A stretch of 64,000 bases of DNA from Lepidodermella squamata. Taxonomy: Eukaryota > Animalia > Gastrotricha. The translations under genes and the position numbers were made by a program. Below are positions 1,248 through 7,200 of the stretch, piece after piece; position 1 is the stretch's first letter, and every line of letters begins with the position of its first letter. The stretch spans positions 248,001 to 312,000 of the forward strand of contig JBLDXI010000007.1 of assembly GCA_047495785.1 (NCBI GenBank). The letters are read 5' to 3'. Below the pieces are notes generated by a model. The model had not been told where the DNA came from. It saw nothing but the letters and a program-made list of their open reading frames with translations, and ran no database searches.

Positions 1248-4200
1248 ATGTTGTATTTTCCGTGTTTTTGGCTGTCATTTGTCACTGCCGCAGCTTTTTT
1301 CCAAGCGGCTTCGTGCTACAACTGGCTGCGATGCTTCTCACAATTCGACAACACATTCGTTCAATGCCGAAATGACGCCCCCAACTGTCCAACGCTTACA
1401 GAATATCAAGTTAGAGAATTATTCACGCTAGAATAAAATTGTTAATTAAAAAATCACTAAATTATGAAGTTGAGAATAAATCTTTCATCTTGAGAAAGAG
1501 TAATCATTTATTTTTTCTATCTTGAAAATTTAATTTTGCAAATCTGCGATAACTATTTCATTCTATCTAATATTTTACGGGTTCTCCTCTTACCGGAACC
1601 TAATTTGCGATTGCGGAACCATATTTATTGGACGTAGAACCACTTTTCAGAATTTCGAAAGGTGATACAATATCGTAAGTCTGAATAAAGGATTTTTAAA
1701 TTCAGCGTAAAATTATTTACAAGACGTAGCATTCACGTTAGAAATCATACATTGTCTCAAATTCTTGGAGTGATTTAAAAATCAATATTTGGCATATTTT
1801 CAATATTTTCAGGTACACGCTCAAAATAAGGAGCCTCTACACGGGTGACAAATTATAATTGAATTGTAAATCGCAATTTTGGCCCCCTATGGGGATAATT
1901 GCAGTTCCTATTTGAGTCGTCTAGGGGTGTATCTCTGTTTCTTTCGACACCTCCCTCACCTTCCCGGTCGTTCTATGGGGTTTTGCTTCGAGCGCGTATA
2001 GGTTCCGCAAGATGCAAATTTGGTTCCGCTAAAAAATATTCCGCCATTTTATTTTATACAGGTCAACTATGGCGCGCAAGATTCTACGCTATGTATTCGA
2101 GGCGTATGCTGTTTGCAGCAGTTTTGCTCATATAAATTAACAACTTCTGTTTTAGAACGGCAAAATTTGCTACAGATTTGCGGCAATCACTCCACGATGC
2201 ACGAGCGGGGCAGATAAGTGTGATGCTGATGAAATCGTGGTGAGTAATAGGTTTACAAAAATCGAATTGCAAATTTACACTCGATTTTTGGACAGCTAAA
2301 TTTCTTTCGCGGTAGCTTATTACTGAGTGCTAATCAAAAGGCGTGCAGAGATGCAATCAGCAAATTCGGCGTAAGTTTATTCTGTACTTCTCGAGTAAAA
2401 TGACTTCATTTGATCACCTTACCTCTCAGAATCAACCATTCCAACGTTGTACTTCAAATGGTCGGACAGTCACGTGCGTTCCAAGTGTCGATAACGTCTT
2501 TTCATGCCCAGCAAATACGGTATTTTATACAAATCGCGCATGAACGATATTTCTCAGATCGAGCGAATATTATTTAGACGATTGGTGGTGTAACTTATGG
2601 CAATTTGAATGCCTGTTTGAATGGAGCCGGTGAGTTATCAATTGATGACAATACCGTAATCCGGTTCAACTTTGAACACCTACGTCCATGCAAACTTCTA
2701 TATGCTGCGTGTAAATTCAACATATGTGATTTTGGTCCAGTTTTCAATGTAGTTCGACTGAGGCCGCCCACCGTAACATCCTGATATTTTTTATTCTCGG
2801 AAATTCGCAAGCGTAAGGATTTGGCAAGGGGTACCCCAAAAGTACAACTTTGAACACCAAGAAATAAAAAATCCACCTTTATTCGTGCGCAGAGAATTTC
2901 GCGAGAAATTTGCTATTTTCAACTCGCTGGTTTGCTCCATAGAGAGCGTAGTGGGCGAAAATTGAAAAATTATAATAAGTTATTAACATTTTTATGGTGG
3001 GCTTTTTACTCGGTATTTGAAATTAATTCGTTGCCATTACGATATAGGAAGTCTTTTTCTGATCACTACGTTCTCTATGGGGCATAGTAGGGTTCAGTAA
3101 ATGCGAACGAAGTCTATAAAAACTTCTATAGAAACATTCTCCACAAAGTCAAAATAATGAATTTCTATCGTGTTCAAAGTTGTACCGGCTACCCTGGCAA
3201 CTTTGAGCGAACGCCACGCAAAAACTACTCTATAGATGGGTGTGCCATTTTGGCTACTTCTTCAGAAAAGTATAAGCTTGAATTCGCCAAGTTGGACCGC
3301 TCGGATATCTGCTACGGTTATCGTAGGGCAACACTTCAAAGTAGACCAAAAACGCTGTTTTTTCGAGAATTTTCAAGGGAGAGACCGTGGGGTCTGTGTT
3401 GATGAAACTTGGCAAAATGTTAGACCACAACGATATCTGTATTCAGTAAAATTCCCAAGTGGTAGATCCCCATGGTTTCAGAGAAAAGCTGATTTGCGTG
3501 AAATGTTCAAACTATAGTACCTGTTCAAAGTTGTACCGGATTACGGTAATTATTGACAAACATATTTTGATGATTTCAATTCAGTGCAAGTGCCCGATAG
3601 CGAGAAGCCCCACATTCGCTGCTTCGATGCCACAACTCGTAATTTTGTCGGCTGTCGACTCGCTTCTGCCGGTTGCGGGAGTGATGTTCCTGATTATTCG
3701 AGTGGAAGTTACAGAACCCTTGCAAACTGCCTCCGTTGGGTAAATCTCAAAAACATTAATTATTTCTTCATTTGTTTTGCTTTGTTTAGCGAGCTGCCAA
3801 GTGCCTCACTGCCGCTGGGGAGATTTGCTACAATTTGTGCCCCTCGGGCTCACAATTGGTATTATGATTCGTTTTACTGACTTCATCTGTTTTGTAAATC
3901 TTGGGTTTTGATGCTGCTAGCTCGCCATCTTCTCTTCGGCTCCGACATTTGCTGAAAACTACGCCGCATGCCAGGGGAATATTTCATTGGTAAAATATTA
4001 TGATTGGTTGATTTATTGTCAGAAGGACAGCTGCTTATTGTGTTTTTAATCAGCCTCTTGATTGTAAGAACAACGGAACTTATCAACCAGCTACTAGAAC
4101 TTGCGCCTGCACTGCGGCGTACCGCGGCGAAACTTGCCAATTGAGTGAGTTTATCGCGGCTGTGTCTTTTGTCGTTAATGAAAATTTTGAGGCGGGGCCC

Positions 4201-7200
4201 AAATGAGACGCTCCGCCTGAAAAATATTCATTGTTATTCGAGAACTTCCACCAGGAAGCAACCATGGTTTTAATATTTCGAAAACAGGTTTTATCTCATA
4301 ACATAAAGGATTTCTTTCTGAACATATATTGGCGTTAGCAGTATCAACGTATCCAGCAAAATAAAATTTCAATGTTATAAAAAATAAATAAATAAATTCT
4401 GATGGAGTGTCTCAACGCATGACCACTATTTTCTTTGCCTCGCATTTTTCTGTAACCATGAGGAACTTTCCTGAAATTCTCGTTAGAATGGGATTTTCTT
4501 AACTTCACTTTCTCAACTAAGGTCTCTGATGAGTCTCATGGCCCAGACGAAACGTATACACGTCAGACTAGCCATTTTTAGAATGGGATTTGTGAGAAGA
4601 AATTGGTGGCAAAATTTTGATCGAGGAATCTGGAATTATTGGAATAAGGATTATGGAACATCAAGTAATTATTTGACATCACTGGCAGCTCTGCCCAACG
4701 AGTAGCATTGCTACTTTGCTGCCAAAGTAGTATATTTTTAATTTCGGGCTTTCGTCTTTAATTTCAGGCTTTAATTTTTTCAGAGCGATATTTCTGGTCA
4801 GGCAATGGACCATGGCGGGGAACTATCCGCAGCTGCGCTAATCAGGGTAATTCTCGAGTTGCAGTGATAAAGACGCAAGAAGAATACGAACTGGCTAAGA
4901 AGGCGATTGACACCGGATTTACAAATTTGGACCGTTATTGGATAGGAGCGACGGCTGTTTTCAACTGGTTGGATGGCTCAACTGTCAACATGTATTCCGA
5001 TAAGTATTGGTCCGTCGATGATCAAGAACCTCGTGGTCGGGGTGAATGTATGAACGATTTTTTTATTTTTGCATCCATATTAGAAGGCAGAACCTAAATG
5101 GAGGGCAGTTATATAAGCCAGAACCCCTAAATATGCCCCATGTAAGATTTAACCCAAAATTGTTATAGGTAATCAATTATGGATCCACTGAAAGCTTAGG
5201 CCTTCTCTCTTGCGCATCACTTAATAATGCACTGTAATGCTCAGGTCTCACATTCTCAACCAGCAGTGGTTTCGCCGATTCAGATTGCAGCCATAACCTG
5301 ACGATGTCGGCTTGTAGTAGCCCTACCGATGTGCGTAATCAATTTCTAATCATCGAGCACATTTTCTAGATGTTTCTTTCTTACAGCCATCTGATATTGT
5401 AATGGGAGGTGTGTTACCGGGTGGGTATGATGATCACTTGCAGTTCTGCAATTCTTTGCAAAGAACACTGCCGATCGTCAAAAGCCCGGCTGTTGCGGCA
5501 GCCCTGAGGCAGTCCATGGTGGATTTTAATGGCGGCGATGACAAAGTGGTATACTTAGGCGCTCGGCGCCCCAACAACCTCGACTCATTTATCTGGTCAA
5601 CTGCTGATACGTTTACGATGGCTACGTCATTGCCACCATTCTCAACTGCGTCGGTTCTGAGTAAAGAAAATCATTGTAAGCTCTGAAAGCAAGCGTAGTT
5701 GTTTATGACGTTTGTAAGCTTGTTGCAAAAATTGAAGGCTGCGCGATTTTTATTACGATTGACGCTACATCCTAATGATTCATAGTAAGTTCGTACCAGT
5801 AGAATCGTACCGTGATTCATTCGTAACTTGATACATATTCAGATAGAGTACAAGATCGATCTGAAAATTTGTTTTAAGCACAAATTAATGCCCGGTTAAA
5901 ATTTCGAAAATGGTGATCTTTTCGTAACAAGCGTTAATAGAAGGAAAAACGAAAATAGAGCAAAACGACAAACAAGCAAATTAAATAATCAATTTTATCG
6001 CGAAAATTGCGCAACGAAATAGGAGCAAAACGAATAAAGAGCAACGACAGTAGAGCAAATTAATGAATAATATATGTGTCGTATATAATGTGGACTTTTA
6101 TCTAATGTCAACTTTACATAGCAAAAGTGCCCTATGTAATGTTGATTTTCATCCCGATTTCTGAAAGCCCTTGGAATCCCAAGTTGACCACAAATTAGAG
6201 TCGGCATCGAGGAATTCGAATCTGATATTTTGAAAGAAATACCGATCACCCAAACTCCCAAAATGATCGATTTTCGAAAATCGATTCCGATCGATTTTTC
6301 GAATATTGTCGATATCATCGGCTATGTTTCACCCATGTGAATGAAGAAATTCATTTTCGAATTCCTCGATGCCGACTCTAATTTGTGGTCAACTTGGGAT
6401 TCCAAGGGCTTTCAGAAATCGGGATGAAAATCAACATTACATAGGGCACTTTTGCTATGTAAAGTTGACATTAGATAAAAGTCCACATTATATACGACAT
6501 ATGCATATATAGAGCAACGAAAATACATTGTGGTCTGAAACTTGTAAAGATGCGACTTGAAATTCACGAATCGTAGTTGAAAATTGAATGATGATGGGCA
6601 CATGACCTTGTAGCTACGCAGTAGTTTGAGTTCATTTTCTCCATCAGCTTTTTTCATTTTCAAAAATAATATTTTAAATGGAAATTGACTTTATTAAAAT
6701 ATTAATAATTTAATAATAATATAATATAATAATAATTTAATTTATTAATAATTCAGAAACTAGTTCATCGAAGCAATAAACTAACGCGGTTTAGAGTTAC
6801 CGAATTACATATCCGTGAAGGAGACACGCAGTAAGAGAAGGGTCCTTACCCAAGCCCGGAAGAAAATTTGAGAAAGTGAAATGTTCTAGCCCAATGATTG
6901 GGACTTATTTTTGTGACAGAAAAAAATATGCCTTTTCATACCTTCAATTATTTGGCCTAGTTAGGAATTGAGGTGAGGTAGAAGTTAAGGTGAAGACGCG
7001 AATCTAGGAAAAAAGAGCTAACTCTACGTAATGGCTAATCAGATGTGCGCCATTGAATTGAAGCTGATAAATAGATTGAAGAAATTGATTAGCTTCGTGA
7101 TCATCAGGTATCTGAAAACGCAATTATTTGAATAAATGCGCGTTCTTTACTATTTTCAGACCACACTATTTCTATTCCGTTGCTCCGTTAGTAATAAATC

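Follow-up and report, generated by a model that had tools for sequence, protein, structure and literature searches.

The insert at positions 4497-4577 of a 64,000-nucleotide stretch of the Lepidodermella squamata genome (hereafter the window, meaning the whole stretch analysed) most probably descends from a small non-coding retroelement of a Penelope-passenger-like kind, as a copy that lost its 5' part and was dead on arrival, and is a relic rather than a device of the host gene in whose intron it lies. The insert carries a type-I hammerhead ribozyme motif near its 3' end. The features on which this reading rests are the following, in window coordinates.

4054-4144, plus strand: EGF-domain exon of the host gene (Pfam EGF_Teneurin, 25.3 bits, above cut-off; spliced contig)
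4145-4783, plus strand: host intron holding the insert, GT..AG, 639 nt (a spliced RNA-type contig joins 4144 to 4784)
4200-4396, no strand assigned: dispersed repeat that lengthens the intron (at least 12 copies, 70-81% identity; query 601-797)
4419-4496, no strand assigned: upstream half of an older repeat, the target of the hammerhead element (downstream half at 4592-4614)
4483-4496, no strand assigned: left 14-bp target-site duplication, TTAGAATGGGATTT (exact repeat)
4497-4577, plus strand: inserted DNA of 81 nt, the probable 5'-truncated 3' end of a retroelement (family alignments)
4521-4569, plus strand: type-I hammerhead motif with helices I of 5 bp, II of 4 bp and III of 4 bp with an AUAC loop, and a complete core
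4558-4559, plus strand: AC insertion private to the window copy (alignment of copies)
4578-4591, no strand assigned: right 14-bp target-site duplication, TTAGAATGGGATTT (exact repeat)
4784-5047, plus strand: next host exon, with C-type-lectin-like sequence (spliced contig, open frame)

The sequence confirmed that the motif at 4521-4569 is a real, putatively self-cleaving type-I hammerhead. Helix I pairs GGUCU (4521-4525) with AGACU (4565-4569) in 5 bp, including one G.U; helix II pairs GUCU (4533-4536) with AGAC (4545-4548) around a loop of 8 nt; and helix III pairs ACGU (4552-4555) with ACGU (4560-4563) around the loop AUAC, with GUAUAC occupying 4554-4559. The core consists of CUGAUGA (4526-4532) and GAA (4549-4551), and C17 falls at 4564, so that cleavage is predicted between 4564 and 4565. 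All elements of the conserved type-I core (CUGANGA, GAA, the A15.1-U16.1 pair and H17) were found, at 4526-4532, 4549-4552 and 4563-4564, together with the type-I topology of three helices with helix I open, and the alignment to the Rfam model spans its positions 1-45. A preliminary description of this DNA, made from the letters alone, had placed a hammerhead here, and its parts and coordinates agree base for base with the sequence.

The same description had proposed a search with Infernal against Rfam Hammerhead_1 as a check, in which the motif fell short of the curated threshold. At curated thresholds nothing in the window reached gathering; a relaxed scan gave a full-length match to Hammerhead_1 (RF00163) with 18.2 bits against a gathering threshold of 34 (E 0.084 on 301 nt), and sister copies of the family likewise fell below the hammerhead threshold in a relaxed search. 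A pattern of core plus spacing matched once in the 64-kb window, compared with 0.01 matches expected from shuffles. Across the whole 121-Mb genome this core-and-spacing pattern gave 20 matches compared with 6 for a reversed control, and about half of the 20 are members of the repeat family to which the motif at 4521-4569 belongs. A chance match is ruled out by the shuffles together with this family of copies.

The motif had also been called intact, a description that holds for the core and fails for helix II, which in the window copy has 4 pairs and a C.C mismatch compared with 5 pairs in the family. A G-to-C change relative to the family costs the one pair, and loop 2 is altered as well. The distal closing stem of helix I is missing from the window copy, having been removed by the end of the element. 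In addition, the private AC breaks the palindromic helix III of the family (ACGUAUACGU) and gives a 4-bp helix III with a tetraloop, which would turn a dimer-prone palindromic helix into a hairpin that is stable in the monomer. When contigs from DNA of other copies are placed on the window, they omit 2 letters at 4558.

The boundaries of the insertion are sharp. Homology to the family runs from ~4502 to 4577-4580, and positions 4497-4501 are junction filler. When the window flanks were joined with one 14-mer kept, they aligned without gaps to L025:1430-1485 (near C50:307886), with 45 of 56 positions identical, whereas the filled window sequence aligned to the same interval only as far as the 14-mer. 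In this uninterrupted copy of the older repeat the 14-mer TTAGAATGGGATTT is single, and a further block of the repeat (4419-4466) matches L025:1329-1388. On these alignments L025:1430-1485 can serve as a paralogous empty site for the hammerhead insert. The claim of an insertion flanked by a target-site duplication is thus upheld by the exact 14/14 repeat together with the uninterrupted paralogous site. The perfect repeat suggests that the insert is not very old.

One public sequencing run acts as RNA, in that its contigs skip GT..AG intervals, and was used to define the host gene. RNA contigs join 4144 to 4784 and seven other exon pairs, and the joined exons form one open frame across 8 exons that ends in a stop codon. 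The later exons resemble C-type lectin, for which Pfam, run on single exons, gave a weak hint of Lectin_C (12.8 bits) on one of them. The spliced contig confirmed that the insert lies in sense orientation in the intron that separates the EGF exon from the lectin-like exon after it. This intron is long for the gene: among the other nine spliced introns, seven measure 50-64 nt and the remaining two 197 and 1635 nt. A paralog at C7:4107114-4108554, on the same contig and with ~72% exon identity, has an intron of 67 nt in the same codon phase. The window intron has been lengthened by three pieces, namely the dispersed repeat at 4200-4396, the older repeat at 4419-4496 and 4592-4614, and the hammerhead fragment. 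The insert probably landed after the duplication of the host gene.

We found that the insert is one member of a dispersed repeat family. A genome search with 4470-4600 returned at least 24 other places that match ~4504-4580 alone, at 78-92% identity, and no fewer than 30 copies of the family are scattered over the 121-Mb genome. On alignment, many copies ran on upstream into common sequence, and in all of them similarity was lost a few bases past ..AGACTAGCCATATTGATT. A longer query gave 40 matches with common 3' ends and with 5' ends at query positions 588, 662, ~734-750 and ~802-824. The longest copies measure ~283-289 nt (for example L011:1287-1575) and several begin at the same 5' point; other copies begin ~75, 140-150 or 210-225 nt further in, with an identical 3' end. 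The element is therefore ~285-300 nt long, with a canonical type-I hammerhead of the invertebrate style at its 3' end, and its copies have been shortened from the 5' side to varying degrees; the window copy, with ~75 of the ~285-300 nt, belongs to the shortest class. Target duplications of 11-14 bp were found in six copies (window 14 bp, L002 13 bp, L003 13 bp, L010 12 bp, L027 13 bp with the sequence TTTAATTGTATGC, and L019 ~11 bp with one mismatch). The family unit has a GC content of 0.42-0.43 and no ORF.

The truncation series bears directly on the earlier proposal of a retrotransposed mini-ribozyme element. Its retroelement part is supported by the copies and their duplications, whereas its 'mini-element' part gives way to a severely 5'-truncated longer element. 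Four or five copies (L002, L003, L008 and L010 among them) are similarly short, as a complete mini-element of 81 nt would predict, yet all that they contain is also found at the 3' ends of the 140-, 200- and 285-nt copies, within which they are nested, and they show no 5' end sequence peculiar to them. We regard it as extremely improbable that the insert is a complete mini-element or, given the copy family and the shuffles, that its motif arose by chance.

Core and cleavage site are kept in 11 of 22 independent loci in the family alignment, and in the remaining loci the core has been damaged by point mutations, insertions or deletions, as would be expected for neutral decay. One locus, of a variant subfamily, holds two ribozymes as a dimer with 117-nt spacing, while no tandem master array of the exact family was seen in the genome. 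Family RNA was absent from the one RNA-type run, which consists of contigs only and in which short RNAs are lost. Among the features of a non-LTR retrozyme, the family has a type-I hammerhead in a non-coding, low-GC unit within the range of 150-450 bp, and target duplications longer than 4 bp.

The ends of full-length copies point to how the element's RNA may be formed. In L027, L032 and L038/L039 the element's own 3' tail (..AGACTAGCCATATTGAT) lies just upstream of the 5' head, giving full-length copies a terminal redundancy of 10-17 nt. Their 5' boundaries fall 0, ~4, ~7 and ~17 nt downstream of the hammerhead cleavage site; the furthest 5' extension stops exactly at that site, and none of the copies reaches into an upstream ribozyme. 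The sample behind these boundaries is four insertion events, with L038 and L039 counted as one event that was later duplicated within a 2.1-kb segment. L038/L039 had been considered as a coding parent because of their common first 89 nt and upstream tail, and were rejected as such, being a single duplicated event without a reverse transcriptase ORF. Since the full-length 5' boundaries lie 0-17 nt downstream of the site, the 5' end of the template RNA may have been made by upstream hammerhead cleavage, and the element 5' ends would then be fossil evidence that in vivo hammerhead cleavage defines the template.

The RNA intermediate, cleavage in vivo and the choice of the mobilising reverse transcriptase are inferences. 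In the proposed life cycle, RNA would be transcribed from a unit that is preceded by another hammerhead, and this upstream ribozyme would cut the RNA and so set its 5' end at AGACUAGCC. Reverse transcription would be primed at a staggered chromosomal nick and would start from the tail ..CCAUAUUGAUU, ~17 nt beyond the downstream cleavage site, the template 3' end presumably lying ~17-20 nt past that site. It would often halt early, leaving copies of ~60-75, 140, 200 and 285 nt with 11-14-bp target duplications. The window copy would have landed in the sense orientation in the older repeat, within an originally short intron, after the host gene had been duplicated. Penelope-like elements often lose their 5' part, occur as partial tandems and carry a short extension called the 'tail' (PMC8557442), and their hammerheads have been proposed to process tandem precursor RNAs (PMC4209133). 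The reading of the ends given here matches these three features as well as the precursor-processing proposal.

We additionally searched for the element that moves the family. There was no reverse transcriptase or GIY-YIG match near any family copy, which makes the family at most a non-autonomous passenger. In the genome as a whole we found at least 25 Penelope-like reverse transcriptase matches, many of them near contig ends, and at least 21 GIY-YIG matches, and both endonuclease-positive and endonuclease-less Penelope-like elements are present. On contig C24, a 617-aa ORF combines a reverse transcriptase with GIY-YIG and is followed ~100 nt after its stop codon by a minimal hammerhead and then AATAAA, with an inverted truncated copy upstream. 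In a second reverse transcriptase-bearing element (L077), the ORF is followed 460 nt downstream by a hammerhead of the ACCGGU type. When two Penelope-like tails (of L077 and L078) were compared with the family, they showed no similarity to it beyond the ribozyme core, so neither of these two could be identified as its partner. The C24 element and the further Penelope-like reverse transcriptases are possible helpers.

The family could instead be a SINE-like passenger of a LINE, with the hammerhead merely part of its body. Target-primed reverse transcription by LINEs, too, typically leaves heavily 5'-truncated copies between target duplications of 11-14 bp, LINEs are present in the genome, and they have been left open as mobilisers of retrozymes (PMC7229834). 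One copy, at L022, lies 235 nt after a LINE reverse transcriptase ORF, and the hammerhead was therefore considered as part of a LINE 3' UTR. This adjacency is coincidental, since the LINE itself, judged from at least 10 of its other copies, stops ~100 nt short of the ribozyme and finishes in a repeat of ATCC type. The sole LINE found beside a family copy thus does not include the ribozyme and has a 3' end unlike the tail of the family, whose copies end without poly(A) or a microsatellite tail. Across a full-length copy there was no Rfam match to a tRNA-, 5S- or 7SL-derived head, nor to any other kind of head, at E up to 10, and a tRNA-derived SINE with a Pol III-type head was rejected for the same lack of a match. 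Type-I hammerheads, partial-tandem redundancy and a short tail are, in addition, hallmarks of Penelope-like elements (PMC4209133, PMC8557442). Mobilisation by a LINE is thus unlikely, and a Penelope-like passenger is the reading we prefer.

The preliminary description had further suggested that the insert could cleave the host pre-mRNA during transcription. As an explanation for its presence, this would mean that the intronic hammerhead is active as a monomer and cuts the lectin-like pre-mRNA so as to lower or tune expression, as proposed for amniote intronic ribozymes. The complete core, the sense position in the intron and the perfect 14/14 repeat, which speaks for an insert that is not very old, are compatible with such a role. 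In the RNA-type run, in contrast, the host mRNA was correctly spliced, with a contig depth like that of neighbouring exons, and depth was zero over 4367-4563. The paralog does without the insert. Because about half of the family copies have lost their core, an intact core at this place is expected by chance.

Thermodynamic predictions gave the hammerhead fold no support. The fold has a predicted free energy of -6.2 kcal/mol compared with an MFE of -8.3 kcal/mol; it is not the MFE structure, the stability z-score is -0.21, and ~0.5% of the ensemble is predicted to adopt it. We compared the window copy with seven other intact copies by means of a partition-function model that included 45 nt of flank and ignores tertiary contacts. 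Predicted pairing of helix II, in which the G-to-C change removed a pair, was 0.00 in the window copy, compared with 0.55-0.92 in five of the seven others and 0.04 and 0.20 in the remaining two. Helix III, made more stable by the private AC, had a predicted pairing of 0.66, compared with 0.00-0.10 where helix III is of the standard form and 0.35-0.64 in variants in which it is lengthened. Since tertiary contacts are needed to stabilise hammerhead cores, the lack of thermodynamic support is not decisive.

In the retrozyme hammerheads of invertebrates, 2 bp and a tetraloop are enough for helix III (PMC7229834), which favours activity of the window copy, whereas single minimal Penelope-type motifs gave no detectable cleavage (PMC4209133) and hammerheads with a short helix III have weak activity as monomers (PMC4209133, PMC7229834). 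The window copy has, moreover, lost the distal closing stem of helix I to the element's end. Non-LTR retrozymes have been reported to be depleted from introns (bioRxiv 10.64898/2026.07.22.740005), which points to a cost rather than a use. Taken together, the normal splicing, the helix II mutation, the loss of the core in about half of the copies and the paralog without an insert argue against co-transcriptional cleavage of the host pre-mRNA, which we consider very unlikely. It is equally doubtful that the window copy is a working single-copy ribozyme that modulates expression of the lectin-like gene, which would make it an early step in the domestication of a ribozyme by an invertebrate.

With the insert read as a truncated relic, the likeliest consequence for the host gene is none. 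Our analysis documents one more hammerhead-tailed, protein-less retroelement family, and the window provides a clean, bounded example of its insertion: the target duplication measures 14 bp, the empty site is known from a paralogous repeat, and the intron has grown from ~67 nt to 639 nt. Where the full-length copies begin and end adds modest support to a long-held view, namely that the ribozyme trims the element's own RNA.

Finally, we compared the family with known hammerhead-bearing systems. Sm-alpha of Schistosoma is a short non-coding retroelement, dispersed or in tandem, with a type-I hammerhead; it reaches a very high copy number and has been described as tRNA-related, whereas no tRNA-like head was detected in the family described here. 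The conserved intronic hammerheads of amniotes and the CPEB3 intronic ribozyme lie in the sense orientation within introns of protein-coding genes and are kept at orthologous sites across species. In contrast, the window motif belongs to a transposon fragment of recent date, which the paralog lacks, and shows no sign of conservation.

A likeness is also found among truncated Penelope-like copies with terminal-repeat hammerheads, which share the 3' hammerhead, the strong 5' truncation and the short repeated tail (Cervera and de la Pena 2014, PMC4209133; Craig et al. 2021, PMC8557442). Single dispersed hammerheads have been explained as truncated Penelope-like copies, their motifs being mostly single dispersed relics like those of the family (PMC4209133). 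Unlike such copies, no member of the family carries a reverse transcriptase ORF, and there is no likeness to the L077 and L078 tails. The family ribozyme also differs from those of the coding elements of this genome in having a real helix III, rather than a minimal ACGU or ACCGGU.

Non-LTR retrozymes measure ~300 bp, are low in GC and lie between target duplications of more than 4 bp, and Penelope-like elements are candidates for moving them (PMC7229834). They have been described as derived from the terminal repeats of Penelope-like elements and as occurring in part as dispersed monomers (bioRxiv 10.64898/2026.07.22.740005). The family resembles the metazoan representatives (Cervera and de la Pena 2020, PMC7229834; Li, Clavereau and Pollet 2026, preprint) in its non-coding unit of ~300 nt with GC below 50%, in a canonical type-I hammerhead whose helix I has ~5-6 bp, helix II 4-5 bp and helix III, closed by a palindromic tetraloop, 2 bp in addition to the A-U pair, and in its target duplications longer than 4 bp, dispersed monomers and co-occurrence with Penelope-like elements. 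It differs in that no long tandem arrays were seen, its only traces of tandem arrangement being the 10-17-nt terminal redundancy and one variant dimer, and in that it numbers ~30 copies, of which the window copy is a quarter-length fragment. The family departs from the class of non-LTR retrozymes or Penelope passengers in its low copy number and the absence of observed tandem arrays. It fits that class in the type of its ribozyme, the size and GC content of its unit, its target duplications and the presence of Penelope-like elements in the same genome.

Two intact hammerheads of the family lie in the same orientation with a spacing of 117 nt at one fetched locus on contig C54 (L013:1380-1565, corresponding to G000:C54:596437-596620, minus strand), and we found a near-identical second locus of this pair elsewhere in the genome (G000:C6:12299-12482), with 99.6% identity across 2.5 kb. 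In both L013 ribozymes helix III is extended to ~6 bp, and double cleavage is therefore predicted to free an RNA of ~122 nt. The L013 hammerhead pair is a very small retrozyme-like dimer.

We additionally observed two hammerhead copies separated by 2.49 kb on contig C50 (L015 and L025; G000:C50:307957-310502). Their downstream 382 bp are identical but the upstream sequence differs, and the identity gives out within the ribozyme core, a pattern suggestive of a conversion tract or segmental duplication with its end at this point.

P-element-type transposase copies also contain hammerhead copies of ~60 nt, placed in sense orientation in the stretch that separates two large ORFs (L016:1432-1599, G000:C7:4208474-4208641, and L022:1441-1590, G000:C38:250039-250200, minus strand). 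According to Pfam, these ORFs carry Tnp_P_element, TNP-like RNase H and GTP-binding domains. Between the two loci the ribozyme is 94% identical and the flanking blocks are 70-84% identical, and ~45 nt downstream there is a conserved 9-nt segment flanked by AG..GT.

The host intron carrying the window's hammerhead insert also contains a separate dispersed repeat (window 4200-4396), present in the genome in at least 12 copies (70-81% identity). On the same contig, ~3.9 Mb away, lies a paralog of the EGF/lectin-like host gene (L079; G000:C7:4107000-4108700, minus strand); its exons are ~71-73% identical to those of the window gene, and its intron at this position measures 67 nt compared with 639 nt in the window.

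Among the Penelope-like elements, L078:656-2700 (G000:C24:4309155-4311200) is a canonical endonuclease-positive element, with a single 617-aa open frame containing RT and GIY-YIG domains, followed ~100 nt past the stop codon by a minimal hammerhead (helix III ACGU) and then AATAAA; on its 5' side lies an inverted, truncated copy of its hammerhead-bearing tail. The RT-bearing element L077:1834-4070 (G000:C54:2950833-2953069) displays an RYLDD motif, a weak RVT_1 match and an ACCGGU-type hammerhead 460 nt past the ORF. ORFs on both of its flanks encode a glycosyltransferase DXD domain, an arrangement that resembles a host gene duplicated to either side of the element. Genome-wide, we found numerous Penelope-like RT open frames, the longest of 1084 aa, situated from a few kb to ~240 kb from contig ends, for example:

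Examples of Penelope-like RT frames near contig ends (contig:position)
C9:19511
C13:6308
C20:4191
C57:203766-228285

This siting is consistent with telomere-associated, endonuclease-less Penelope-like elements.
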